Both the position numbers and the translations under genes were made by a program. A DNA stretch of 64,000 bases, taken from positions 2,232,001 to 2,296,000 of the forward strand of contig BQFW01000006.1 in the NCBI GenBank assembly GCA_020891255.1, given 5' to 3'. This stretch comes from Entomortierella parvispora E1425. Lineage: Eukaryota; Fungi; Mortierellomycota. Below, in pieces: positions 23,874 through 51,055 of this stretch (the stretch's first letter is position 1; the number at the start of each line of letters is the position of its first letter). The notes beneath the pieces were generated by a model that was not told the origin of the DNA, ran no database searches, and saw only the letters and a program-made list of their open reading frames with translations.

Positions 23874-26221
23874 TTAATTGCGGGGCTGGGAAGCGTGCTC
23901 AGGATGGGAGATGAACTCCTCGAGTCCGCCAGAAGCAGCCGCCATGGGGAAGACGTGCTCTTTCTTGCACACCTTGGCCTCCATCACGACGGGGCCGTCG
24001 TGGGCCAAGAACTCGGCCATGACGCCAGGAAGATCCTGCATTGAAGTCGCACGCAGTCCCTTGATGTTCATAGCTTCGGCCAACTTGACAAAGTCAGGGT
24101 TGAACATTTGAGTGCCGGAATAACGCTCCTCGTAAAAGAGATCCTGCCACTGCTTGACCATTCCCTGGAAGTCGTTGTTCAAGATGAGAACCTTGACTCC
24201 AATGTTGTACTGAGCGGCGGTGGCAAGCTCCATGCCGGTCATGCAGAAACTGGCATCACCGTCAATGTCAACCACAATGTGATCAGGCTTGGCCACCTTG
24301 GCACCAATGGCAGCTGGAAGGCCGAATCCCATTGTGCCCAAACCGCCCGAGGTGACCATGGAGCGAGGATGGCGCCAACGGAAGTATTGAGCAGCCCACA
24401 TCTGATGCTGACCAACACCAGTGGTGATAATGACCTTCTCCTTCATGTTCTCTGTCTGCTTGTTGAGCTCCTGAATCACAGTCTGGGGCTTGAGGGGGCC
24501 GTTGGGGTCCTGGACGTGGTAGAATGGGAAGCTAGTCTTCCACTGGTCCAACTTTGAGAACCAGTCTTTGCGCTCAGCCGTCTCGATGAAGGGCAAGAGC
24601 TTGGTCAAGTTCTCTGTCACATCACCCTCGATGGCCTCAGTAGCCTGGACAACCTTGTTGATGTTCTTAGGAGAGATCTCAAAATGGATGATACCTCCCC
24701 GCTTCTCCTGAGCGGCCTTGCGGGCTTCCGGTGCGAATCGAGGAACATTGGCAGTGACACGATCGTCGAAACGAGCGCCCAAGGCAATGATCACATCAGC
24801 ACTCTGCATCGCCAAGTTGGCATATCCAGAACCGTGCATGCCGACCATGTGGAGCGAGCGAGGATCCAATTCGTCAAAAGCTCCGAGTCCCTGAAGAGTG
24901 GTCGTGACAGGAATGTTGCCGTTGTGCGAGAGCTCTTTGAGACGAGCAGGTCCATCAGGGTGTGCCAAGATACCCTGGCCTGCATAGATCAAGGGTCGCT
25001 TGGCGGCATTGATCAACTGAGCGGCGCGCAAGAGCTGAGGGGAGGTCACTTTGGCAGGATCCTGAGCGAGGCCGGCAAAGAAGGGAGCCTGGCTTGCTGG
25101 AGGACGAGATGGAATGGCGGGACTGGTGGGAATGGGGCGAGTCAGGACTGCGGCCGTGATATCCTTAGGAAGATCAACCAAGACAGGTCCTGGCCGGCCA
25201 GAGGTCGCAATCTCAAAGGCCTCGTTGATGCGCTTGGGCAGATCGGCAATGTCCTTGACCATAACGTTCCACTTTGTGCAGGCGCGGGAGATGCCCAAGA
25301 CATCAGCTTCTTGGAAAGCATCAGAACCGATGGCGGTGACGGGAACCTGGCCAGAGAAGACGATCATGGGGGTGCCGTCGGACATGGCGTCCTGCATGGC
25401 GGTAATGACATTGGTGGCTCCAGGACCTGTTTGATATCAAAAGAAGGTTGCTGTCAGTGATAAGGCAGGAGACACACACATTTTAGGCTCTTTCTCGCTC
25501 GAACAAAGCAAAGATCTTGCTCCTACCAGAGGTGACCAATACGACGCCGGGCTTGCCCCTGTCATGTGCAACAAGAAAAAAAAAAAAAATCCGAAGATTA
25601 GGACCCAGCCAGTGATCACAGAGTCATTTCAGTCATTTTATGATTCGGACGCGGATCGGAGATAGCGAACGAAAAGTGGCTCATGCACCCTCTCCCGTCC
25701 TTGTGCTTGTTCGCTCTCTATATCTCTTTTTGCTCAAAGTGGGCAACTTACGTGACTCGCGCATACGCTTCTGCGGCATGGCCTGCTCCTTGCTCAGCTC
25801 TGGGGAGGATGAACTCAAAGTGCTTCGAGTTGTAGATCGCATCGAACACGGGCAAGATGGCTCCGCCAGGGTATCCAAAGACATGTTTCACGTCATGGCG
25901 CAGCATCATCTCGTGAAAGATCTGGCCTCCAGACATGCCCATAAAGGAATGGTCATGGCCCGGTTTGGTTGCAGCAGCGGTTGTGGAGGGGACGAGAGGC
26001 TCGGGGGCGGCGACTTTGCCTGGTGCAGAACTCACAGTCGTACTGGACCGTTTCGTAGCAGTAGCGGCTGCAGAAGAAGACTGGGTTCTGTACTGCACGT
26101 TGTGGCGCTGATGCAGAGTAGAAGACCGCACAGTCGATGCTCTTGTTGATGAGGCGGATGCTGTGGCTGCAGAGACGAGCCTCGATCTGGCCAGTCGGGT
26201 GATATGTTGTGTTGCTTGCAT
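23874..26221 (-). CDS. ILV2: Acetolactate synthase (AHAS) catalytic subunit, mitochondrial
   Basis: Arg/Ser-rich presequence, FGYPGGAILPVFD, GKPGVVLVTSGPGA, GRPGPVLVDLPKD, GARFDDRVT, TGVGQHQMWAAQ and the ThDP motif DIDGDASF...LILNN. Two introns between about 25430 and 25750. Confidence 0.97.
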
Positions 26222-26494
26222 GGTTGGAATTAAGAGTGGGGAGGAGAGGAGAGAGTTGGTATAATAATAATAATAAGTTTCTCAAGTGTCCGGAGGAGGG
26301 AGGTTGGCAAGAGCAAGCCCGGACGCAAAGTCGTTCGAGGTAGAGGTAGACGAAGAGGTAGGTGGGGTGAAGGAGAGATGGAGAGGAGCGGAGGGAGCGA
26401 GCCTTTTAAACAAAAGACGAGAGAGGCGACTCCATCCTGATCGCCAGTGGTCGCCCATCACCGCGCTGTGAGTGGTGCTCTTGCTCAGAGCGAG

Positions 26495-26542
26495 ATTACT
26501 CACAGGCCATGGCCGTCACACTCCAGCACACAAATTACTCAC
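26495..26542. promoter_or_regulatory. Duplicated ATTACTCAC (bZIP AP-1/Gcn4-like) element in the ILV2/ILV5 divergent promoter
   Basis: Exact 9-mers at 26495-26503 and 26534-26542 in the 494-bp intergenic region. Confidence 0.4.
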
Positions 26543-26715
26543 TGGCGCAAAATCTTGTTTCTGGGCCTGCGACGCATGGATCCCTTTTAACTCGCTCGAT
26601 TCGCTGTCTTTCCACCCTTCTTCTTTCTTTCCATCTTCACTCCTCTCCTCTCCTTCTCTTCTGCTATCTCACCCCTTCTCCCCCCTCTTCCCCTGTATAT
26701 ACTCTTACCTCTATA

Positions 26716-28027
26716 ATGAGCTTCGCTGCCCGTTCTGCTTTCCGCCAGTTGACCCGTGTCGCTGCTGCTGCCCCCAAGACCCGCTCCTTCTCGGTCCTTG
26801 CCCGTGCCGCCACCACTGCCCAGCTTCCTCGCGCTGCTGCCTGCAAGGTAACTTGGACTTTTTCTCTTTGGATCTCGTTCGATCTCTTATCATTCTGGAT
26901 GCTTGGATGACCTTATTGACTCAAGTTGTGTTTCTTTCTATTCTCTGTTGTGTCTACAGGTTGCCTTCAACCAGACTCGCGGCGTCAGGACCATGGACTT
27001 TGGTGGCACCAAGGAGGTTGTCTACGAGCGTTCGGATTACCCTCCCGCCAAGCTCCAGGAGACTTTCAAGGATGATACCCTGACCGTTCTCGGTTACGGC
27101 CCCATGGGCCGTGGTCAGGCCCTCAACTTGCGCGATAACAAGCTCAATGTCATCATTGGATCCCGCAAGGGTGCCTCCTGGGACAAGGCCGTCTCGGAGG
27201 GTTGGGTTCCCGGCAAGAACCTCTTTGAGATCAACGAGGCTTGCGAGCGTGGTACCGTCATCATGAACTTGCTCTCCGATGCTGCCCAGTCCAAGCTCTG
27301 GAACGAGATCAAGCCCTACCTTACCAAGGGCAAGACCCTCTACTTCTCCCACGGTTTCTCGGTCATCTATTCCGAGGATACCGGTGTTGTCCCTCCCAAG
27401 GATATCGATGTGATCCTTGTTGCCCCCAAGGGATCCGGAACCACTGTCCGTAACCTTTTCCTTGAGGGCCGCGGTATCAACGGATCCGTTGCCGTTTACC
27501 AAGATGTCTCTGGAAAGGCCAAGGAGCGTGCCGTCGCCCTCGGCGTCGGTGTTGGTACTGGATACTTGTACGAGACCACCTTCAAGCGGGAGGTCTACTC
27601 TGATCTCTATGGTGAGCGTGGAGTGTTGATGGGCGCTATCCAGGGTCTGTTCGTTGCTCAGTACGAGGTTCTCCGTGCCCACGGTCATACCCCCTCGGAA
27701 GCCTTCAACGAGACTGTGGAGGAGGCTACCCAGTCCTTGTACCCCTTGATCGGAGCCAATGGCATGGACTGGATGTACGCCAACTGCTCGACAACCGCAC
27801 AGCGTGGTGCCTTGGACTGGTGGAAGCGTTTCCATGACGTCTCCAAGCCCGTCTTTGAGGAGTTGTACGAGTCTGTTGCCAACGGCACAGAGACGAGACG
27901 CTCGTTGGCCAAGAACTCTACCCCCAACTACCGCGCCGAGTTGGAGGCCGAGTTGGCCGAGATTGCCAACCACGAGATGTGGGTCACTGGCAAGTCTGTC
28001 CGCAAGCTTAGACCTGAGAACCAGTAA
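26716..28027 (+). CDS. ILV5: Ketol-acid reductoisomerase, mitochondrial
   Basis: Presequence MSFAARSAFRQLTRVAAA, intron 26848-26960, then NLLSDAAQ, LYFSHGF, VAPKGSG, SDLYGERGVLMG, EAFNETVEE and NCSTTAQRGALDW. Confidence 0.97.
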
Positions 28028-28467
28028 AGATAGGGGGGGGGTTCTGTGATCCAGTTCATAAATCGCATTGCTTTTCACTTGTAATATCAATAAAAAAAAC
28101 CAATCATGTAGCAACAGTACTTCTCTGGTTTCCTTTGAGATCTTATCATCCAACGAATCGATAGCGTCCGTGTGGAGAGAGGACTGCCATCGATCACAAA
28201 AAGAGCCCTGCACATGCCAGCGCAGGTCAAGATCGCCACCAACCTAGTGCTCTGCCAAAGACAGAGGTTAGTCATGGATAGGGAGATGAGCAGGCTATCA
28301 CAGGAGGTGCCATCATCCCTCGTCATCGCTGCCCCCGAAGCCCTCCACCTCGCTTCTCTTTCTTTTTCTATTCCCCAGTCAACTCTTGCTTCCTCCTCGA
28401 TCTCCTCATTCTTGTACTCCTTCTTGCCACTCATCTACATCATTCGGAGCGAAGCGTCTCTTTGACA

Positions 28468-29910: not shown

Positions 29911-31310
29911 CTAAAAGTCAATGTCATCCTTGAGCATGCCGCCGCCAAGCTGCACCTTCTCGCCAGGCTGGAATGCAGGCATGCCAGTGTATGGACATGA
30001 TCCACAACGGAAGGCATCTCCGAGATAGCAGTTTCCACATGAAGACTTTGGCTGCAAGGCCTTTGGCACAACCTCAGTGATGGCCGACTCCTTCCACCGG
30101 TTGGCGTTTGAGGCGACAATAGCCTCTTGAGGGACAGGTCCTGCAGAGGAATCAGTCATATCCACATCTCCTTGCTCATCCTCGGGCTCGCCCTCAGACT
30201 CCATGCCGCAGGTGCAGTTCTTGCACTTCTTCTTCTTCAGGCTGTTGGGCCCGCACTCAGGTGCCTCCAATTGCTCCTTTGTGGGTTTGACCAAATCCGA
30301 TTCATCCAGCAAGTCATCCTCATCCTCGAGTTCCTCATCATCGTCATCGTTGGCAGAGATGGTCCAGACAGCAGCCTTGTTGACCTTGGGGGCGACGACA
30401 GCAGGGGCAGCGGGAGTCGAGGCAGCAGCAGCAGCACGCTTCTTTGCCCAAGGCAATGCGGCAGCAGCGCCTAGTTCATAAGCAGGTTTCTTGGCCGAGA
30501 TCTAGAAAGGAAGAAAGAGTCCGAGCAATTAGTAAGTGATTGCACCACCAAAAAAAAAAAAAAAAAAAAAAATAGATGCCTATCATCTCGGACAAGAAAA
30601 TATGAGCACGCCAGCCCATTTGAGATTGAAAGGACGGTCAATCTTACCTCGACAAACTCGATCTGGTCCTTGAGCGCAGCAACATCGGTCTGGACACCCC
30701 AGGCCTGGATCAATCCTGCAATCTCTTGCTCGGAAGCCCTACGTTGGTTTACCACCGTGACCTCAACAAATCCCGAAATCTTGAGGGCCGAAACAAGATC
30801 GGCGCTCGAGCGTCCCAAAGTCTGGGCAATTCCGGAAGAGACAACCTGGGGATGGGCGGAAGCGGAGGCTGCGAGCACGGGCTCAGTCAAGGCCAATCCA
30901 CCACCGGGCAACAGAGTTCCAGCCAGGGCAGTAAGAACTGTGGTCGAGTGCTGATGGGCAGAAGGAGCAACTGCGCCAGTGACGATGGCATTGTAGGTAG
31001 ACTTTGGCAAGGGGACTAGAGGGAAGGAACAGACATAAGCGAGGATTTTTTAAAAAAGAGTTTTTTTTTTTTTTTTTTTTCCAGGAGTCAGCTTCAAGAC
31101 AGAGGGGAGAATGTAGAAACAACAGGAACATTGGTCCTTACTGGAGGCAAGACGGTCAAACTGCTCAAAGTTGACAGAACCCTGGCTACCAACGGAGGCA
31201 AGAATTGAGTCGCGAGCCTGGGTCAGGTCTGTGGCCGAGGCCGAGGCTGTGCCAACGAGAAGGACCTTGTGTCCTTGGCTGACAAGGGATGAGGTAGCAA
31301 CAGGGGACAT
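29911..31310 (-). CDS. DRE2: Fe-S cluster assembly protein Dre2/anamorsin
   Basis: C-terminal Cys motifs [17 protein letters not shown] and [31 protein letters not shown]; N-terminal methyltransferase-like domain; two introns. Confidence 0.95.
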
Positions 31311-31785
31311 TCTTGAAAATGTGTAAAGTTGGGGAAGGGTGAAGGGTTGCCGAGTGGTTAGAATGCACAGGAGGCTAGGAAATGAAAGAGGGATGCGGGA
31401 CAAGAGAGATAGAGGAAGAGGGAGACGGGCACAACAGAAGAGATGAATGGAAGTTCGGTGATGAAAAGAGAGTGAATGTAGAGACCACAAAAAGACTCAT
31501 ACATATCATTGTGGAGGATTTGTCATTGGTGGTGGCGGATGCTTGCACCCACGTGACTACTTCGGAAATTCACAGTGTATACGATGAAAGCAATTCTGAT
31601 ACGTATTGCCCTGGCCTCTTGGCCTGTCAGGATCCCGTCCTGATCAGTGATCAGGTGAAGGCCGAGCTACCGCTGCATTCAAGTTCGCATTCATTCCAGG
31701 AACCGACCCCACCCCACCCGAACACACTCGACAACTTCGGAATCACTCACCTCCACCCGCCTACCTACATACATATCTATATACC

Positions 31786-32718: not shown

Positions 32719-35303
32719 TTATGGGGCCCAGGTCTCGCGATGGAAATCGACCGCCCAGTTGGCCAGCTTTGTCTGCTTCTCGATCATGTCCACAAATCCA
32801 TCGGGTCCACCTCCAAAGACGGAAACCAGACCATGGTCCTTATCTTTGGATCCGACACCGGCGTCGACAAACGTCTGAATGGCCTTCTTAACATCGAGGC
32901 GACCCCTGGAGTAGACAACATCGCCTTCATCCCAGTTGCCATCCTCAATCGCAAGGCGCTCGTCTTCCGTGGCCAGATCAGGGTAAGGCAAACCACCCTT
33001 CTCCAAATCACGGCCGCGACGCATCAGGATCTTTCTTGCCAACCAAACAGCAAAGTAACCAGCAATAGACGAAATAATGATCTGGATAGTACCAGGGATC
33101 AAGCCATAAGTCCAGCGACATTGAGCCTGGATAATAGTACCACGCTTCTTGGTTGTAGGGCACCAGTTGGAGGGGCCTTCCCAAGGGACCGAGCGAGCCA
33201 CACACCAAGCGGCGAGAGGGATAAAAATCAGGATACAAGTCATCAACAGGTCAAGCTTGGCCCATTTGGTTGCGACAGAGACGGATCCGGAGGCTTGGAA
33301 AGTAGGCAGAGGCTGGTCGTTATAGGTCATGGCACGAGTAGGATGGGCAGACGACTTGGGCTCGACGCCTTCCTTCGCAAGCTCGCAGCCTTCCTCAACA
33401 ATATCGTCCAAACCGACGACGGTGTGAACAGACTCAGAGCGGTGGATGGAGGATTCTTTGCTGTTGGTCTGGGTCTCTTCAGCAGACGCATCGACTTGAG
33501 GATCCCTGGGGTGGACAGGCGACTTTTCGACATCAGAGGCAACAATGGTACGACCAGAAAGAGCGCGCTTGAGCATGGTGCCGGTGCGCTTGAAGGAGGC
33601 AAAGCGCTTCTTCTTGTCCTTCTTCTTGAGTTGACCGGGAACCATGATATCATTCTTGACAACGTGGGCGTGGGCACCCATCAACGTCTGAGGCTTGTCA
33701 GGGCGGGAGACATAGATCTCGACGTGCAACCAGCTGGTGAATCGAGGATCACGGGTGATCTGGTGCAAGAAGGAACCATAGGCGTGCAACTCACTGCGAG
33801 TGCGGAACGTGCAGATCAAATGCAATTGCATGCGAAGAGGCTCAGGCGAGGCGGCGATCTGGGCGGCAATGGCCTTGATCAAGGACATGAAGGTGGTAAT
33901 GGCAGCACCGGCGACAAAGATGATCACCGTCTCGGACTTGAGGTAGTCGTGGCGACGATCACCAAAGACACCATCGACATTGGCGCGCACACGGATGCGC
34001 TTATCTTCGTTACCACACAATCTAGCAAGGTTGCAAGTCCAGCTCAGCTTGGAATCCTCGAACGTACGGATGTAGAGAACCATCGAATAGGGATCCTCGG
34101 GCCAGTAAGAAGCAATTGTGAATGGATGGTAGACGGTTCCAATCTTGGGGATCTGGACTGAGATGTAATCGCCAGGATAGTAGGGCTTCATGGGCTCGGG
34201 CGATGTGAAGGTCATTCGGATAATATCCGCATCCGAGTTGAAGGTGCAGGTAGCCTCGGGCAAGATTGTGCGGGCTTGCATCATCTTGGGAACGAACCGA
34301 TCGACCAAGAAGAGAATGATACTGGGGAGGAGGTAATACCAGATCAAGACGCTTGGGTAATGGGTGATCATACCCACAAAGAACACTGCAGTCAAGAAGC
34401 GATGGGAGCTCAAAAACAAAAGGTAGCAGCGACGACGGATTTGAGGGATGGCACCCAGACCAAGGAGAACGACAGCACCGTAGGCAAAGACACCCATCAT
34501 GTTCAAAGTACCACGGCTGAGGTCATAGAAGTTGATGTCGGACGCGAGGCGACCTTCATTGCCCAAGAAAATGACATAGCCGATGGTGTGGACGGTACTC
34601 CAAAAGACGATGGCAACTCCCAGCCATCTATGCAAAGGCAAGATTTCAGAGTAGGTGAAACCAATGGCATGGAGCATGGACCGACGAAGGACGAGGAAAA
34701 GAATCATTGCACAGCAGGCAACGACGGAGTAGCCACTGGCGTTGCCAGCCATACCTGATGACCATGAAATAAAAACATTAATACAAGTTTTTTTTTTTTT
34801 TTTTTTTTTTTTGATCGAGACGGCGTGAGTAATGGGAACTTACGGGCAATGCCACCGAGGTTTCCAAAGCGCTGAATCATTCTTGGGGTGCCCAAGACCA
34901 TGGGGACCGTGAACCAGGCAATGTTCATGAGGACAGTGATGGCAACCATGATCCAGTACTTGACCGTGTATCCCCACCAGATATGTCTTTCCCAGAGGGA
35001 GATCTTTTGGGTAACGGAAGCAGGAGTGGTGACCTTGGCGATACTGTGCTGGAACTCGCGCTCAGCTCTAAAATAGTGGCCCCAGATGGTTGCGATATGT
35101 CCCAAGATCGAAGGCGCCATGCAGGCACCGAGCATGTAGTAATCACGCTCGCCATAGAAGTAAGCACTGGTGATCTTGGCTTGCCAGGTCAATTGGTAGT
35201 CGCCAAATAGATAGGCAATCGGAATCAGGGTGCAGATGATAATGAAGAGGTAGAAGGGTCTCATCATCCTAGGATATCTGATGGACTTGAGGGAGAAGGC
35301 CAT
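32719..35303 (-). CDS. Ferric/cupric reductase (FRD superfamily, FRO/FRE type), paralogue 1
   Basis: Four heme His (LHRWLG, TVHTIG, SSHRF, THYP), FAD motif YHPFTIAS, VDGVFG, IIFVAGAAITTF, and terminal GGPDG...DFHRETW. Intron 34755-34843. Confidence 0.9.
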
Positions 35304-36426
35304 GATGAAAATGCAACAAAGGGGAAAGAAACAAGGATGACAGGAATTCTATGGCGAGGGAATGGTGGAAGGGATGGGGGTGATGGAGGAGAGGGTGAGG
35401 GAAGACCGATCAGCTTTTTTTTTGTTTTTCCAATAAAGGACTCACAAAAGATCAGCCAAAGAGTGAAGGAAGGAGGAGGAAGAGGAGGAGGAGAAAAGGG
35501 TGAGGAGCAGGAAAGTTGGTGAAGATGTTCGGTCCTTTTTATAATGGTGAAAACAGATCGACGGAGACCGAGGAGACGGATCCGTCCAAATTCCGTTGTT
35601 TGGGGCGATTCAGCGATTTCAGCCATGGCCACCTGCATTTGTCTCCCTTTGAAGTTTGCAACAACGACCGTTTCTGTAAGGGACGGATAGGAAGAGCAAC
35701 AACGATGCGCGTGGAGAGAGTGGGAAAGGATTGGGGACAGGGATAAAAAAAAAAGACAGGTGGGCGGGGCACTGAACTGGGTATGATAGACTGAGTTTGC
35801 TCGATGACAGCAGAGACTGAACCCGACGCGCGCTGCTATTCGACGCTAATGGCGAGGATTCAATTGAATGGAGAGTGACATTAAACTAAACCGTGTCCTG
35901 TGTTCATGCTTGCTTGTGCCGCGTCGGCTCCGTTCTCGTCCGTCCAAGTTAGCAAGTATGGTACCGAAGGGCCGTAAAGGGCAAATGAGGGAGGGATGGA
36001 TGTCTCTGGGAGCTGTGTATTCCCTCTTTTCTTTTTTTCTTTCTTTTTCTTTCAATTTGACCTCCGCCCCTTTGTTCATGAACCAATGTCCCAATGAGGC
36101 ACACCAAAACAGAAACAGTTTTTGTTTGTCTTTGTAGATTCCTCTCATGTGCTTGCCCGCCAGATTGTTACTCATGGACTGGCCCAGACTGTGATCTGTG
36201 GTACATGTACCGCTGGATGGCCATGGTGTGTCTTGGATCAGGATCGCATGGCGAGATCGCTGACAACAATTGTATCGTTTGCGTAGACAATCGATCACCT
36301 TCACTACAAAGATGCAGGGGTGAGGATGGCGGTGAGCGAAGGTCTTGATGGTGAGAACCGATCGAGTCCGTGCCTGTTCTGGGAGTGGACGCAACAGCAG
36401 CTTTGAATCAGCGGCTAAGTTCTATT

Positions 36427-39425
36427 TTATCTGATCTCCAAGTGAATGGGTGGACTTTAAGCTGTCCGCCTTCCGCCCTCGGTATTCATTATCAGATCCA
36501 AGCGTTATCGGCCATCCTGGACCCGAGCAAAGGCAAGAAAAAAAAGATGGGGGGACAAGCAGGACAGGCACAGGCGCCAAGTTTTTTGAGTCCGATTGGC
36601 TCGGCAAGAGAATGCACCTGAAATGCCAATTCTTGTCCATGGAGACGCAGATGGTGAATGTTCTCTCACTCTGAGGAGAGTAGCGAAAACGACGTTGCAA
36701 ATCAAAGCAGGGTCTTTGTTTGTCTTCTCGTTGTTTTTCTTCATCATTTCACATCTGATAAGAGACGTGCTCCTTTTTTTTTTTTTCTTTTTTTTTTTTT
36801 TTAAACCAGCGAATCCCCGGTAACGTCCTCCGCTCACAAGCTGGCGGGGATGCGCCCACAGAAATGTTCCTGAGTTGTACTACCAGCACGCTACGCGTAC
36901 ACGTACAGGATGCATACTGCCCTCCACGCTGGATCTGATAAGCACTCTTTTCACTCACTTGTTTCGTTATCTCCATTGATTTGAAGCGACAGCAACACAG
37001 TGTCAGTCATTCGCAGAACACGTCCTTTAGTAAAAACTTGCATGTAGTCTGTCTTGGGATCTGACATTGGACTCAATGTTTTCTTGGGTTCGCTCGCACA
37101 ACTGCATGTACTCTTCGGCTAAGCAGCACAGCAGAGAAAAAGGTGAGCAAACACCGAAGAGACACTTTCAAAGAGACAGATCAATTCAGGACCGGCAGAG
37201 CTGGATCATACCCCCTTGTCTTCTTTGTTCGTATGTCTTCCCTCTGCCATCCTCCAAGCAAGTTCGCACCCAATTGCCCTGTGCAATTGCGAAGTACCAT
37301 TTCATGAAACGATTGGAGTTCCATGGCTGTGTTTGCAATTGTTCTGAACTTCCCATTTGAGACAAATGGGACAAAGAAAGTGTCCACCCCTGCAAGCGCC
37401 CTTGATCTTCCAGCTCCACATAGGAATAACAAACTTCAGGGCATATATAATTTGCTTGTCTTCCATCTCAGCTTTCGTTTGGCGGGGAGTATAGTCAGAG
37501 CGAGAGACATGTTTAATTGTGTTAAGGTGCTTCTGCTCTACAACGCAAGGACCTTGGGCCAATGGATACCCACTAAAGGAAGCTCTTGCCAACACTGCTC
37601 TTCAAGTTGCAGAAGAAGTGAGCGGGGATTGCAAGCTTAAGCTGCGAACATGTTCATATCCAGCGCAATTTGCACATCGAATGCCGACTAAAAGTACATG
37701 TTTGGTATATTTTGTCCGTTTACTACCGTACTTGATCCTTTGAAACGGCAGAATGGGCTGATGTCGAGAAAAAGACTGGCCATGAATCGAGTCTTTTTTT
37801 TTTACGCCATTTTATTGTTTGTCATCTTTTCTATCATGGCACCGATTCTCTGGTGGTAGAGCGCCTCATAAGCCGACTGGGCCAGAAGCGACCCCACATC
37901 CTGATAAGAATATTTTCGAAATAAGACCGTCTGCAGAATAGGGACGAGATCAACAGCAGCATCAAGCTATATAGGGGAAGGGTCAAGCAAATGTACGCAA
38001 TCCTGAACGACCACGGTCCCGCGCCTAAAGATCCTGTGAATCCAAGGACCTTGAGCAGTGGTCGGACAATCATCATAGTCGAAGATCCAGTGATAGAAAA
38101 CACAAACTGTTCGAGTGGCCGACGGCCAAAGAAGGGAGAAGGAAAAGGAAAGTTAGAATATCAAGTACATCATCGCCATCATCGTGGCTCTCAACAAATA
38201 TGACTCTGAAGGTCAGAGTGGGGCCTTTTTCACTTACAATGATGATAGTCCACTCCAGCCACCAATTGAAGCTGAAGCGCTCACGCACCATCTCGCGGTG
38301 GTGAGCCAGTCGGTCAGTGGCTACGACATGAACCTTTGGGAAACCATCATGTCTTGAGTTTGCCCCTGGTGCTGCTGTGTCTTCGATTTCTACGAGGGTG
38401 GTTGACGAGGGGTAGGATGAAGCTGCGCTTTGGAGCAACGGCTCGCGTTCGTGTTGTCCATTCAACGGCTGCACTGAATGTGTTGTGGATGACATTGTCT
38501 GGGACGTGGAGAATGGAATGATGCTGATGTGGAGTTAGGGAGGAGCGAGGGAGCGCAGACGAGGCGCGTTCCATTGCTTGCATCTTGGATGGTCGCCAGG
38601 CCCAGAATGAATGAACGAGCTCGTCACGGGATCAAATCTGATAAAGAAAAAAAAGAGATCAAGATGCTCACGTGAGACTTTCAATCTGATAAAGGGGAGG
38701 GTGGGAAAGAGAGCCGTCGGTCGGGCTGGAAATGGAGCCTGAAGATCGACAAACTGAACCTTCATAACTTCCAGACCCATCCATCTCCTTGTCCTTTTCG
38801 CCTCTGTGCTGCCCCCGTGCACCCAGACCAGAACTGCAGAGCTTTGCTGGGCACAGGTGCATCTTCCAGGGCCGTCCTTAACCTTGTTGTGGAAGATCTG
38901 ATGGCTTTAGTTTACTGAATAGCCTCCCTGTTTTTGTGTCCAATTGAGTACGAGACCACCTTCAGACCAGTAAAAAAAAACAATCTGAAAACGGCGTATG
39001 CGAAAGGTTTGTACTCTTCAAAAGGCATGTATGTCCATCAGCCCCCTTTCAGTAAAAGGAGCGGAGTCTAAGAGGGTGGCCATTAGGCACTCCTTAGTCA
39101 CAGAGGATCGGTTTTGGACAGCGACCCGTCAAAGAGGAGATAGAAAGGAGTGACCCGAGTCAGAAAGACAATTTTCTGTCCCTGAAGTTATCAGATGGAC
39201 ATTCCCGAGCCAGTCTTATCAGATTTTTTTTTTTTTTTCTGTCTCTCTCGTGTGATGACTGATGTGGAAAGGGCAAAGATTTTTAAAGCTCAACCGAAGA
39301 GGGCCTTCTGGGCGTCATTCAATCTCCTCTCTCTGTCGGTTTCTGCTGTCTCCGACAAGTCCCCCGTTCTTTGCCCAATTCTTTTGATTTTTTTTCTTTT
39401 AATTTTTTTTTTCTACATCTGATAA
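36427..39425. promoter_or_regulatory. Array of nine exact ATCWGATAA (SreA/Sre1-type iron-repressor GATA) sites
   Basis: Exact matches on either strand start at 36427, 36489, 36753, 36933, 38636, 38684, 39188, 39216 and 39417. Confidence 0.8.
37834..38495 (-). CDS. Small membrane protein resembling DUF6787
   Basis: Two exons (intron 38107-38237, gtaagt...cag) give WWLEWTIII|FVFSITGSSTMMIVRPLL...GPWSFRIAYICLTLPLYSLMLLLISSLF. This resembles the FAITGS...LPxY pattern I recall for DUF6787. The start codon is uncertain (38495 or 38583). Confidence 0.65.
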
Positions 39426-41985: not shown

Positions 41986-44736
41986 ATGGTTTCCGTCATC
42001 GGTGTTCTTCAAACCGTGGTGATCAGCATGTGCCTCGCCTGCTATGTGGGCTGGCAGTTTGCAGACTACTTTATGCTCTGGCAAGCCAACATCAAGTCTC
42101 ATTTCGTCTTTGGTCAAATTGACCTTTACTGGTCCGTTGTCTGTCTCCTACCGATCCTCTTGGGGCACTTTGTTACGATTTGGGGTAACTACTTCCGAGC
42201 CACTGCACAATTCGAACACTCGATTGCCAAGGTCACAACCCCGGCAAACAAGCACCAACAGATCTCGTTTTGGGAACGTCATGACGGTTGGTTTGGTTTT
42301 ACGGTTAAGTTTTGGTGCCTTGCCGGTTTGATTACAGTCATGAACCTTTACTGGTTTATTCTGACCACGGTCTTGAGTCGAGATGGCTATGTCGCCAGTC
42401 TGAACAACTCGACTCAGGCGACGGTTCGAGCCATTGCTTACGGAAGTTCGCAGGCGGTGTTGCTGGACCTGTCTATTATCTTGTTCTTGGTCTTGCGCCG
42501 GTCGATGCTGCACGCACTTGGGTTCACGTACCCAGAGCTGATTCCTCTGCATCGCTGGCTGGGTGTAACCATGCTGGGATGGGCTACGATCCATGGAGCG
42601 TTCTACTCGGCGTGGCTGACCATGACAGGCCAGTTCACGAGCAACATTGCGTTCACTGACAAGACACGCGGCACCCGCGACATGCCTGGTGTTTTCGCTT
42701 GGGTAAGTGAGCGGATCTGATAATTTCCCTGCCCCTGTCTCGAATGTCTGTCCATCTGCCCACCCCCTTGGCCGATTTGGGTGTCCGCCCCTGTGCGGTT
42801 GACTGTCGGTTTCCTTATCTGATCAAAACATTTTTTTTTTTTTCTCGTATGTTTGTTTATCCGCCTTCGTGGTCTCTGACTCTGTCCCTGCGTTCTCGTC
42901 GTCCAGTTCGGAATGGTCATCATGGCCTTCTTTGCCCTGCCCCAGTTCCGCCGCGCGGTCTATCCCATCTTCCTCTACATCCATCGCGCTGGTACCTTTG
43001 TGTTCATGATTGGCCTCATGATGCACTACCCCTCGGTCATGTTGTGGTACTACGCTCTTCCCGGGTTTGTCCTCTTCCTCCTCGATCGCTTCGTCCCAAA
43101 GATCATGCAGGCCAGATCCATCAGCCCGATCGCAACTTGCTCCCTCAACACCGATGCGGACATCATCCGGGTCAAGTTCTCCTCCCATGAACCCATGAAG
43201 CCCTACTACCCTGGTGATTACATCACTGTCCAGGTTCCCGGCCTCGGCAACATCTACCATCCATTCACGATCGCCTCTTACTGGCCCGAGGATCCTTACT
43301 CGATGACGCTGTACATGAGAGTGTTTGGTGACTCCAAGTTCAGTTGGACGAAGGATCTGGCCAAGCTTTGTGGAAACGACGACAAGCGAATCAGTATCCG
43401 CGCCAATGTCGATGGTGTCTTTGGTGATCGTCGTCACGACTACCTCAAGTCTGAAACGATGATCATCTTTGTCGCCGGTGCTGCCATTACCACCTTCATG
43501 GCCTTGATCAAGGCCATTGCTGCCCAGATTGCCGCCTCGCCTGAGCCTCTCCGCATGCAATTGCATTTGATCTGCACGTTCCGTACTCGCAGTGAGTTGC
43601 ACGCCTATGGCTCTTTCCTGCACCAGATTACTCGCGATCCTCGCTTCACCACCTGGCTGCACGTCGAGATCTATGTCTCCCGCCCTGACAAGCCTCAGAC
43701 GTTGATGGGTGCCCACGCCCACGTTGTCAAGAACGATATCATGGTTCCTGGTCAGACCAAGAAGAAGGACAAGAAGAAGCGCTTTGCCTCCTTCAAGCGC
43801 ACAGGCACCATGCTCAAGCGCGCTCTTTCTGGTCGCACCATCGTCGAAATCCCTCCACCATCGCTTGCTGCCAACGCCTCAGCAATTGAAGCAGAGGCAA
43901 GATCCACGGATGTGAGCAATATCTCCTTGGAGCGTTCAAGCTCTGTCAAGTCGGCTGTCGATACTTTGAACAACCAGGAGCGACTCGATGAGTCTGGTAT
44001 CACTGTTGATTCCTCGTCCTCTGATCAGGCCAGAGGATCGAACGATAACGAATTGTCTTCGATCCCTGAAAAACCAAAGATGAACATGACATACAATGAG
44101 AACCCTCTGCCAACGTTCCAGGCTGCAGGTACGGCCACCGTCTCCAAGAACTTGGCCAAATTCGACCTTTTGACCAGCGCGGTCTTGGTCGCGGTCCCAA
44201 TGGCAATCTACTACGCCATCCGCACAGTGAAGTGGGAGGGCAGCCCTCACTACTGTCCCACTACCAAGTCCAAGAGCAGTTTCACGATCTTTGTTTGCCA
44301 ATGGACGTACGCTCTCCTCCCTGGATTCTTCCATCTCTTTGCGTTCTTGTTGCTTGGATACGGTGGTATCTATATGGCCCGCAAGGCTCATCGCAGATCG
44401 CAAACCGGTGGCTCTGATGTGGAGACGGCTGTGCCGTATCCAGATTTTGCGGCCGAGGATGAAAAGATCTCTGTTGAGGATGGAAACTGGGATGAGGGTG
44501 ATGTTGTCTACAGCCGTGGAAGGATGGATGTCCGCAAGGTGATCCAGTCTTTTGTGGACCTTGGCATCGGTAGCAAGGTCTCCCATAAGTCTGATCAAGG
44601 ACCTGGAGCCAAGCAGCACCGCGGTCTGGTCTCAGTCTTTGCTGGTGGTCCCGAGGGCTATGTGGATATGATTGAGCGCCAGTGCAAAAAAGCGGCTTGG
44701 TCAGTTGAGTTCCATCGCGAGACCTGGGCCCCTTAG
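41986..44736 (+). CDS. Ferric/cupric reductase (FRO/FRE type), paralogue 2
   Basis: LHRWLG, TIHGAF, YIHRAG, MHYP, YHPFTIAS, VAGAAITTF and GGPEG...EFHRETW. Intron 42703-42906. Confidence 0.9.
42715..42823. promoter_or_regulatory. Two intronic ATCWGATAA sites in reductase paralogue 2
   Basis: ATCTGATAA at 42715-42723 and TTATCTGAT at 42815-42823, inside the 204-nt intron. Confidence 0.6.
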
Positions 44737-48186: not shown

Positions 48187-48522
48187 GCACCCTGTAGTTT
48201 TTTTTCTTTTGTTAATTTGTATAAAAGAGCAACACCATGGACGACGCGCGAAAAAGTTGTTGACATGAGATCAATAGAGTGTGAGGAAGGGGCGCGTCTA
48301 GGCGCGTCTGTGCCAGGGAAGTGACAGACTCCAATTGGGTGAATAGCGAAATCCTGCCGCGGTTGTCACTCACCAGGATCCTCTCTGATTTGAACCCCAG
48401 TTCTTTTTTCATTGTCAGTGTGGGCGCACTCACAATGCTCTCCCCTTCCCCTTCCACCTTTCTCCAAACCACTTCATCTCTGTAGCCTGAACAAGCAAAT
48501 CGCCCACACTCTTTCCCTTGCA

Positions 48523-51055
48523 ATGGGTATCGGCAACTTCTCGATCACCACAGCCGTCATCTGTTTGTGCCTAGTTTGCTATGTCGGTTGGCTTTTGGCC
48601 GATTACCTGATTCTCTGGGCTAGAACAATACGCCGCCATTATGTCTTTGGCCAAGTTGATCTGTACTGGTCTGTTGTGGTACTATTGCCGTTACTCATCG
48701 GTTATTTCACCACTGTCTGGTACAATTACTTCCAATCCGTCTCTCAATTCCAGCTGTTTATCGCCAAGGTCATCTCCCCCTCCATATCTTCAAGGGCTCA
48801 TTTCTCGTTTTGGGAGCGCCACAACAGGACGCCCAAAGTCTGGTGTCTGGCCGGGATTATCATCTTCCTTAACCTATACAAGTTTATCTTCACTACCGTG
48901 CGAAGTAGACAAATTCTGTTTATCAACATGTTCGGCAACACACCGTTGGCGACTGTGCGCTCACTTGCCTATGGAGCGGCGCAAACACTTCTTTTAAACG
49001 CCTCTATCATCCTGTTCCTGGTGCTGAGGAGAAGCATGTTGGAGGCGGCTTTTGGGCTGACCAACAAAGAAACTTTGCCGCTGCATCGATGGTTGGGTGC
49101 GTCCATGGTCTGTTGGGCGATACTGCATGCATCGTTCACGCTGTCGTGGTTGAGTATGGCGGATCGGCTGAAGAGCGATATTGCATTCACGGACAAGACC
49201 CGTGGAAACCGCAATCTGTGCGGTGTTTTTGCCTTGGTAAAAAAAAAGCCTGGTTTCACACACAAAATGACCCTGCATGTTTTTCGTTGGCCACGTTTGA
49301 GGCTGTGTGGCTTCCCCCCCCGATTTCAGAGAAAAAAAGCCTAGAAATAATTTTATTCACATTGTTTTATTCTCGGGTTTTATTTTTTAGTGTGGTCTGG
49401 TTGTTTTGGGCGTCTTTGCACTCCCAAAGGTCCGTCGGGCATTCTACCCTGTCTATTTGTATGTGCACCGCTGCGCGGCTTTCATCTTCCTCACCGGCCT
49501 CATGATGCACTACCCATCAGTGATGCTCTGGTACTATATCCTGCCCAGCTTCATACTCTTTCTCCTTGACCGTTTCGTTCCAAGGATCTTACAGGCCTGG
49601 TCTCTTGATCCAACCGCCACCTTTACTCTGAACGTCGATGCACGCATTGTCCGAATCCAGCTCAGCTCGCGCGAACCCATGAAGCCTTACCTTCCAGGCG
49701 ATTTCATTAGAATAATGGTCCCCGGGCTTGGAAACATCTACCATCCTTTCACAATTGCAAGCTACTGGCCTGAAGACCCTTACAAGATGACATTGTTTGT
49801 ACGCGTATTTGGCAACTCAAGGCTTTGCTGGACCAATGCCCTCGCCAAGGTCTGCAATGGAAACGAAGGGCCGAAGGACAGGAAGGTTGCCAATTTGCGA
49901 GTCCATGTCGATGGCCCCTATGGCGGCCGTCGCCACGACTACCTCAAAGCTGACACTGTGATTATTTTTATCGCCGGTACTGCCATTACCACTTTTATGG
50001 CCTTGATCAAGGCCATTGCTGCCCAGATCGCGGCCTCCCCAGGGCCTTCTCGCATGCAATTGTATCTGATCTGCACTTTCCACACCTGCAGTGAACTGCA
50101 TGCATACGGTTCATTCCTGCATCAGATCACTCATGATCCTCGCTTCACCAATTGGTTGCATGCTGAGATATTTATTACCCGACCAGAAAAGCGTGAAACG
50201 TCGCAAGGAGCTCCTACTCGTGCGGCCAGCAATCATACCGCAACCTGTAGTCATATTTCCGCTGACACCGCAGGGTCGATTACCACTCACCTGCTGCTAC
50301 CGACGGTCGAACCTGAATTCTCCCCTCATTCCGAAAAGAAAGCGACCGGGTCCACGATTTACGATGGTCGTCCACTCCCAACCTTTGATAGTTCTTCCAT
50401 CTCTGCCGGGTTGGCCTCCAACCGGCAGGCGAAATACGATCTGGCGATCAGCTTCGTTTTGGTCGTGATCCCCTTGAGTGTCTTTTACGGTCTGCGAGCA
50501 GTCTCCTGGGAAGGGTCGAGCCATTGGTGTAGGACTACGATGGACATTAACAGCAATCGAACAGTTCTCATCTGTGACTGGACGTACGCTCTTATACCGG
50601 GCTTTGCGCATCTGATTACGTTTTTGGTGCTAGGATACTCGGCCATATATTTTGCGCGTCGGTCACATCGTCGTCGGATGCAAAGGGAAAGACGCGGAGC
50701 TGATGTCGAGGGCAACGAGGCCATGACAGGGGCTGGTCGCGAGAGTACGTTCGGGCTAGATGATGGAAACTGGGACGAGGGAGATGTTCCATATACTCGT
50801 GGCAGGATGAAGATAAGCCAAGTGATTCAAAATTTCCTGGATAAAGGAATTGGCTGCTCATCCTCCTCTGCCCAGCGTCCAGTGTTTTCTATGGAAACAG
50901 GAGAGACACAAGAGCCAAAGGAGGGTCAGCTTGGAACCAGCGGATTGGTTGCTGTTCTGGCAGGTGGACCTGAGGGGTTTGTGAACATGATTAAGTGCCG
51001 GGTCTACAAGGCCGCCTGGTCTGTCGAGTTCTACCGTGTGACCTGGACAATGTAG
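48523..51055 (+). CDS. Ferric/cupric reductase (FRO/FRE type), paralogue 3 (divergent)
   Basis: LHRWLG, ILHAS, YVHRC, MHYP, YHPFTIAS, VDGPYGG and IAGTAITTF. Intron 49237-49390, at the same position as in paralogue 2. Confidence 0.85.

Follow-up and report, generated by a model that had tools for sequence, protein, structure and literature searches.

The nine-base word ATCWGATAA was found to be over-represented in the promoters regulated by SreA in Aspergillus fumigatus (Schrettl et al. 2008, PMC2610380), and the same paper states that the in vivo sites of Ustilago maydis Urbs1 and Schizosaccharomyces pombe Fep1 comply with it. Histoplasma capsulatum Sre1 binds (G/A)ATC(T/A)GATAA in vitro (Hwang et al. 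2008, PMC2275787). SreA homologues have also been reported from Mucor (PMC7011435) and Rhizopus (PMC12638772), and the word was noted once in silico, in the rfs promoter of Mucor lusitanicus (PMC9226013). A literature search on iron-GATA regulation in Mortierellomycota found nothing. Here we analyse a stretch of 64,000 nucleotides from Entomortierella parvispora E1425, a member of the Mortierellomycota (contig BQFW01000006.1, positions 2,232,001 to 2,296,000; hereafter the window, numbered from its first letter). It carries two divergently transcribed ferric-reductase genes, FRE-A and FRE-B, and between them a gene for a DUF6787 protein and nine exact copies of ATCWGATAA. The original prediction for this DNA had taken the word for the consensus of fungal iron-responsive GATA repressors (SreA, Sre1), which agrees with both of the papers that describe it in Aspergillus and Histoplasma (PMC2610380, PMC2275787). 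We consider it likely that the copies are binding sites of an iron-sensing GATA repressor of the SreA/Fep1/Urbs1 type.

The site array and its conservation

An exact search of the window returns 11 matches to ATCWGATAA. Nine of them lie in a 3-kb part of the FRE-A/FRE-B intergenic region: sites 1 (36427-36435, minus strand), 2 (36489-36497, minus), 3 (36753-36761, plus), 4 (36933-36941, plus), 5 (38636-38644, plus), 6 (38684-38692, plus), 7 and 8 (starting at 39188 and 39216, both minus) and 9 (39417-39425, plus). All are exactly where the original prediction had placed them, and its close pairs 36427/36489, 38636/38684 and 39188/39216 are confirmed, at distances of 62, 48 and 28 bp. The remaining matches, sites 10 (42715-42723, plus) and 11 (42815-42823, minus), both fall in intron 1 of FRE-B, which confirms that the intron of the second paralogue is the only other place where the word occurs: the other 52 kb of the window holds zero further exact matches.

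A uniform-base model does give about one match in 65 kb, as the original prediction had calculated. In 100 dinucleotide-preserving shuffles of the 64-kb window the word appears 0.81 times on average and at most four times, against the 11 copies observed. When a first-order Markov model is trained on the intergenic region (6,682 bp), it predicts 0.088 matches there, where nine are found (Poisson P ~8e-16). The density in the array is approximately 100 times that of composition-matched or neighbouring DNA. The excess, and the selection, concern the full 9-mer rather than the GATA core: the WGATAA core shows only slight enrichment (61 against 45), and one-mismatch variants of the word occur at background level (25 beyond the exact sites, approximately 24 expected) and are unclustered in the array. 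An unbiased k-mer count points to the same word, since ATCTGATAA, with 8 copies, outnumbers every other non-simple 9-mer of the intergenic region and has 1 copy elsewhere in the window. The 12 to 15 bp on each side of the sites show no mutual similarity, and a repeat search of the region finds only poly(dA:dT) families and no other repeat family that bears the 9-mer. The sites are therefore independent occurrences and not copies of a repeat.

The array can be divided into groups. Two pairs stand 1.1 to 1.6 kb upstream of the FRE-A start codon. The first consists of site 1 (ATCAGATAA, 1.12 kb upstream of the FRE-A ATG) and site 2 (ATCTGATAA, in the orientation of FRE-A), which lie 62 bp apart. 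Sites 3 and 4 (both ATCTGATAA) form the second, 180 bp apart, with a long poly(T) tract directly after site 3. Sites 5 and 6 (both ATCTGATAA) are found 141 and 189 bp upstream of the ATG of the DUF6787 gene; a CACGTG E-box lies between them, just upstream of that start codon, at 38669-38674. One further pair and one single site stand 0.7 to 0.9 kb upstream of the DUF6787 ATG. The pair (sites 7 and 8) forms a module at 39188-39224 on the minus strand, in which a poly(A) tract is followed by ATCTGATAAG, a short GC-rich element (approximately TGRC-YCGGG) and ATCTGATAA. The single site 9 (ATCTGATAA) is preceded by a T-rich tract and is the member of the main array nearest to FRE-B, at 2.56 kb from its ATG. 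Of the intronic sites, site 10 (ATCTGATAA) begins 12 nt past the start of FRE-B intron 1 and site 11 (ATCAGATAA) is located in its 3' half.

We compared the orthologous locus in eight other Mortierellaceae genera, and the orthologous intergenic DNA of each carries two to nine exact matches. In seven of these genera the DNA from FRE-A to its upstream neighbour contains 41 sites in 57 kb, against a single site in 81 kb on the opposite side. In Benniella all 7 sites fall within 4.6 kb around the DUF6787 gene and FRE-A, the remaining 16 kb being free of them, and no exact match occurs in a Gamsiella control locus of 19 kb. Equal frequency of the motif elsewhere, one of the outcomes named by the original prediction as refuting it, is thus ruled out by the remaining 52 kb of the window (0), the flanks in the relatives (1 in 81 kb) and the control locus (0). 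ATCTGATAA is also the top 9-mer common to the orthologous intergenic regions in 8/8 species, with 44 copies in total.

Not only the word is retained. Toward FRE-A the sites follow the order (+,+), (-) or (-,-), DUF6787, (-,-), (+) or (+,+), FRE-A, and this order is seen in the window, Podila, M. claussenii, Gamsiella and Benniella, and with one change in Linnemannia. Most relatives have one site placed and oriented as site 2, and most keep the pair formed by sites 3 and 4, between the DUF6787 gene and FRE-A, in unchanged orientation. Within approximately 250 bp of the DUF6787 ATG, one or two sites are present in Linnemannia, Podila, M. claussenii, Gamsiella and Benniella. In the FRE-B intron, site 10 has an equally placed counterpart in M. 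claussenii (L125 4734) and in Gamsiella (L004 2099, next to the 5' splice site). Site 11 has one in the M. claussenii intron (L125 4890) in the opposite orientation, which gives that intron the same two-site arrangement as in the window.

The surrounding DNA is largely scrambled. Intergeneric BLASTN against seven relatives aligns only the exons of the DUF6787 gene, the paired-site module (39150-39280) and a short stretch at site 3, the last being a match to the Gamsiella locus. In the module, an alignment of six genera shows both 9-mers to be invariant except at the W position, and the poly(A) tract and the GC-rich element are kept as well. The GC-rich element (39197-39215 in the window, 3734-3758 in L003, 6043-6060 in L008) is found between the module sites in six genera, and 6 of 8 intergenic regions contain its word CCCGAGTCA; a partner factor may bind there. 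The pattern of conservation at the locus bears the signature of purifying selection on protein-binding DNA. The occurrence of sites in both orientations argues against an element that acts at the RNA level. The conservation in related genomes proposed as a check of the original prediction is therefore found, in sequence for all eight genera and in order and orientation for most of them.

Some further observations concern loci with a different layout. In Benniella (L126) the gene order is rearranged, with leucine-rich repeat (LRR) genes in place of a divergent FRE-B, and in Actinomortierella wolfii (L006) two reductases stand in tandem with the DUF6787 gene on their far side. In both species exact sites are still present in every intergenic region of the cluster. 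The lone exact site outside the reductase intergenic regions occurs in Dissophora globulifera (L008, 15260), 1.26 kb upstream of a fusion gene with isocitrate/isopropylmalate-dehydrogenase-like and aconitase-family (Fe-S enzyme) domains.

A candidate factor and the regulation it would exert

A regular-expression scan found no gene for a GATA factor in the window or in eight FRE loci. We then turned to the cysteine-rich block that separates the two zinc fingers of known iron-responsive factors. A degenerate DNA pattern for C-N-G-T-G-G-x3-C-x-G-C-P was scanned over metagenome contigs and gave 116 loci, nearly all of which encode CPGxGxCNGTGGxxxCxGCP together with at least one GATA finger; this validates the pattern. 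None of the 116 loci belongs to Mortierellaceae, because the block of these fungi reads CNG[A/E/I]GG instead of CNGTGG. One of the loci, L072, is intronless, encodes 711 amino acids and is closest to Endogone. Its protein was used as the query of a protein search, which returned many Mortierellaceae proteins.

Eight of these were aligned: P0226 (Gamsiella), P0228 (E. parvispora), P0223 (M. alpina), P0224 (M. antarctica), P0209 and P0219 (Linnemannia zychae), P0218 (Podila epicladia) and P0192 (E. beljakovae). They are 53 to 62% identical to L072 across the finger-Cys-finger region, and both GATA fingers as well as the four cysteines of C-X5-C-X8-C-X2-C are invariant among them. Pfam reports two GATA stretches in each of the three SreA-type proteins scanned. 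Compared to the Dikarya pattern in the metagenome, the Mortierellaceae proteins differ by the CNG[A/E/I]GG reading and by an insert of 40 to 60 residues between finger 1 and the Cys block. A C-terminal block is kept among the long Mortierellaceae forms and partly in Endogone-like and Umbelopsis proteins. The two-finger GATA factor with a Cys-rich spacer, which the original prediction made a test of its proposal, is thus present at the level of the lineage, across Mortierellaceae and including Gamsiella, where the SreA-type factor and the site array are both found. The number of SreA-type paralogues is apparently two or three per Mortierellaceae genome (P0209, P0219 and P0232 in Linnemannia zychae; P0222, P0223 and P0237 in Mortierella alpina).

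If the sites are read by such a repressor, regulation may be pictured by analogy with Aspergillus, Schizosaccharomyces, Ustilago and Histoplasma. Under iron sufficiency the factor would hold an iron-sulfur or iron ligand on its Cys block and occupy the sites, by which FRE-A, the DUF6787 gene and FRE-B would be shut off. Upon iron starvation it would leave, with joint induction of the three genes. What the two-finger factor reads would be the extension of the GATA core to the partly palindromic ATC-W-GAT, and the close pairs (28 to 62 bp) could allow dimer formation or cooperative binding. The poly(dA:dT) tracts beside many sites probably keep them free of nucleosomes. Control of FRE-B would appear to run mainly via the two intronic sites.

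Several points weigh against repression by an SreA-type factor at this locus. Most sites stand 0.7 to 1.6 kb away from the start codons of their presumed target genes, and the 2.5 kb upstream of FRE-B contain none. The two or three SreA-type paralogues, together with an expanded GATA family, leave several candidate readers of the sites. The SreA-type gene is demonstrated in relatives, the genome under study being seen as a 64-kb window. Finally, a third reductase paralogue in the window (48412-51055) has zero exact ATCWGATAA nearby, which implies that the reductase family is not uniformly under the control of the array.

The strongest rival holds that an SreA-type factor does bind the sites and that it activates or acts dually, as Cir1 in Cryptococcus, so that the array drives expression. 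The cis and trans evidence is the same for this reading as for repression, the sequence being silent on the sign of regulation, and the many sites that are distal (0.7 to 1.6 kb) or intronic fit enhancer-like and silencer-like action alike. The architecture of Cir1 is divergent, which counts against it as a model here. Cir1 has been described as a major regulator of iron uptake functions (PMC2991262). However, the characterised two-finger members that go with the exact motif (SreA, Fep1, Urbs1 and Sre1) all repress uptake genes when iron is replete (PMC2610380, PMC2275787), and we regard activation as unlikely.

A slightly less probable reading is that a GATA factor of another pathway, for nitrogen (AreA/Nit2-type), light (WC-2-type) or development, uses the sites and that the reductases answer to that other signal. 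The GATA family is expanded in Mortierellomycota (PMC12638772), the motif includes the generic HGATAR core, and 5 of the 11 sites have a preceding G, which creates GATC, the WC-2C motif of Rhizopus (PMC12638772). This G at position -1 is not conserved, however. Moreover, a factor content with the core would hardly account for an excess that barely touches WGATAA and leaves one-mismatch variants at background, whereas the word matches that defined for iron repressors letter for letter and stands at ferric-reductase genes in nine genera. The last rival, that the cluster arose by chance, as an artefact of composition or from copies of a dispersed repeat or transposon end, has next to no probability: several sites do abut poly(dA:dT), the sole repeats found in the region, but a chance or repeat origin is refuted by a P of ~1e-15 under the model trained on the region itself, by unrelated flanks, by a repeat search in which no family carries the word and by independent recurrence at orthologous positions in eight other genera.

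Genes of the locus

Both flanking genes encode ferric reductases that are divergently transcribed, as had been predicted and as Pfam confirms; splice sites were read from the sequence. FRE-A (paralogue 1, approximately 831 amino acids) occupies 32719-35303 on the minus strand. Its exons run from 35303 to 34844 and from 34754 to 32719, with an intron of 89 nt (34843-34755), the ATG at 35303 and a stop codon that ends at 32719. FRE-B (paralogue 2, approximately 848 amino acids) occupies 41986-44736 on the plus strand, with exons at 41986-42702 and 42907-44736, an intron at 42703-42906, the ATG at 41986 and a stop codon ending at 44736. TATA-like boxes are seen near 35540 and 41786, respectively. 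Ferric_reduct and FAD_binding_8 score above the Pfam cut-offs in FRE-A (66.7 and 27.7 bits) as well as in FRE-B (35.6 and 23.5 bits). NAD_binding_6 stays just below its cut-off of 22.2 bits (19.9 for FRE-A, 18.7 for FRE-B); a long insert with hydrophobic segments interrupts this domain. The closest named proteins to FRE-A all come from Mortierellaceae, namely from Linnemannia hyalina (82% identity), Mortierella sp. GBA35 (81%), M. antarctica (80%) and Podila (79%). From family membership we infer that FRE-A and FRE-B are iron-acquisition genes.

The two proteins are 62% identical to each other. A tract of approximately 420 bp is 93 to 98% identical between FRE-A (~33560-33972) and FRE-B (~43413-43825), against 50 to 75% for the remaining coding sequence; it spans the start of the NAD-binding region and is probably the result of gene conversion. 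A third reductase of the same subfamily, on the plus strand, follows 3.7 kb after FRE-B, beyond an LRR gene; its core shares 68% identity with FRE-B. This is the site-less paralogue mentioned above. FRE-A, FRE-B and the third paralogue are each 50 to 57% identical to the E. parvispora reductase P0062, the closest full-length match in this species and the only one compared. Set beside the 82% match to Linnemannia hyalina, this means that the annotation of E. parvispora omits these genes or that the species name calls for a second look.

The DUF6787 gene (37834-38495, minus strand, as FRE-A) encodes approximately 176 amino acids in two exons, 38495-38238 and 38106-37834, separated by an intron at 38237-38107. 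Both exons are kept in relatives, and exon 2 matches PF20584 with 49.6 bits (cut-off 27.5). Two membrane helices are predicted for the protein, whose N-terminus is of low complexity, and the gene possesses a TATA-like box of its own, as do FRE-A and FRE-B. Its nearest clusters in the Atlas are small membrane proteins of Bacteroidota with the same domain, which we treat as a lead only. No paper mentioning the family was found in a literature search for DUF6787. The gene is syntenic with FRE-A in Linnemannia, Podila, M. claussenii, Gamsiella, Lobosporangium, Actinomortierella and Benniella. When contigs of four sequencing runs, of unknown kind, were compared to the region, they matched only as fragments of the DUF6787 exons of relatives. 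It is tempting to see in this protein an accessory membrane subunit of NOX-like ferric reductases, induced by iron starvation and comparable to p22phox for gp91phox; we rate this as rather improbable. In this reading the protein, of a family otherwise met mostly in Bacteroidota, would have stayed between the reductase genes and within the array since the ancestor of Mortierellaceae.

An Rfam scan of the 6.7-kb intergenic DNA returned nothing. Downstream of the array, a TATA-like box at approximately 39830 (plus strand) is followed by about 2 kb, up to 41790, without a conserved block, convincing open reading frame (ORF) or Rfam match. This gene-free stretch upstream of FRE-B is unusually long, the equivalent in relatives being 3.6 to 4.5 kb.

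Neighbours at the locus include an anamorsin, an LRR protein, the third reductase, a biotin ligase, a major facilitator superfamily (MFS) protein and a Kelch protein. The anamorsin/Dre2-like gene (cytosolic Fe-S assembly) lies directly downstream of FRE-A at 30471-31490 on the minus strand and carries no motif. The input to Pfam consisted of 17 ORF translations from the window, namely 12 of the 19 ORFs of at least 230 amino acids together with five of lesser length; the other seven long ORFs belong to the ILV cluster (23874-28213) or are overlapping frames on the opposite strand. Among these 17 translations there is no FTR1 permease and no FET3 multicopper oxidase, and the locus does not form a complete cluster of reductase, FET3 and FTR1. 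The original prediction had spoken of an early-diverging fungus that uses the same cis-code to control a multi-gene reductive iron-uptake locus. The first part is supported, as far as sequence reaches, by the conserved array and the SreA-type factors in the family. The second was overstated: two reductases and one DUF6787 gene do lie at the array, but FTR1 and FET3 are lacking among the scanned ORFs and the third reductase has no site.

Comparison with known systems

Summarizing, the exact 9-bp code of the iron repressors and the diagnostic architecture of their factor are both present in Mortierellomycota, as far as can be told from sequence alone. Since the two occur together in this lineage, the iron-GATA switch is probably older than the divergence between these fungi and Dikarya, and the findings support the extension of a known kind of system to an early-diverging lineage. 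For Mortierellaceae, which are industrial lipid producers and abundant in soils and rhizospheres, this provides a concrete and testable model of iron regulation. The locus is also an unusually clean example of conserved regulatory grammar, in which the order, orientation, pairing and intronic placement of sites outlast the scrambled DNA around them. In addition, an uncharacterised membrane protein, DUF6787, is nominated as a candidate for the iron-starvation response or iron uptake. If it were indeed a reductase subunit, it would be a new component of fungal reductive iron uptake.

Several described systems resemble the locus. The SreA homologues of Mucorales (Mucor, PMC7011435; the Rhizopus microsporus GATA factors Znf4 and Znf8, PMC12638772) also belong to early-diverging fungi, with SreA-like genes that are often duplicated, and Mucor lusitanicus rfs (PMC9226013) likewise has one in silico ATCWGATAA at an iron gene. 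These reports differ in that they concern Mucoromycota and include no conservation analysis or site architecture. At sid1 of U. maydis, distal upstream GATA sites mediate iron repression by the two-finger factor Urbs1 (An et al. 1997, as cited in PMC2275787), which is similar to what is proposed here; that case, as cited, is a basidiomycete siderophore gene with two distal sites. In H. capsulatum, every gene of a co-regulated, clustered set for iron acquisition has the Sre1 consensus, to which the GATA factor binds in vitro (PMC2275787). There the set is an ascomycete cluster for siderophore biosynthesis with at least one site per gene, whereas here a reductase cluster of an early-diverging fungus has multiple paired sites.

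Fep1 of S. pombe (fio1-fip1, str1) also acts on a shared control region between divergent genes of reductive uptake. This repressor, too, has C-X5-C-X8-C-X2-C between its fingers, as given for the Pichia orthologue (PMC4992955). The genes themselves differ, fio1-fip1 being an oxidase-permease pair and the present ones two reductases and a DUF6787 gene. So does the intergenic region, which here extends over 6.7 kb, embeds a third gene and is accompanied by intronic sites.

A further parallel is SreA of A. fumigatus. In both cases the identical 9-bp word lies 5' of genes for high-affinity iron uptake, which in A. fumigatus include the reductive system, and in both the cognate or candidate factor combines two GATA fingers with a Cys-rich block. 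The A. fumigatus regulon is enriched in the motif by a factor of only 5.4, usually with one or a few copies in each promoter. In the present Mortierellomycota host, nine perfect copies are packed into 3 kb and two more occur in an intron, with their order and orientation kept across genera.

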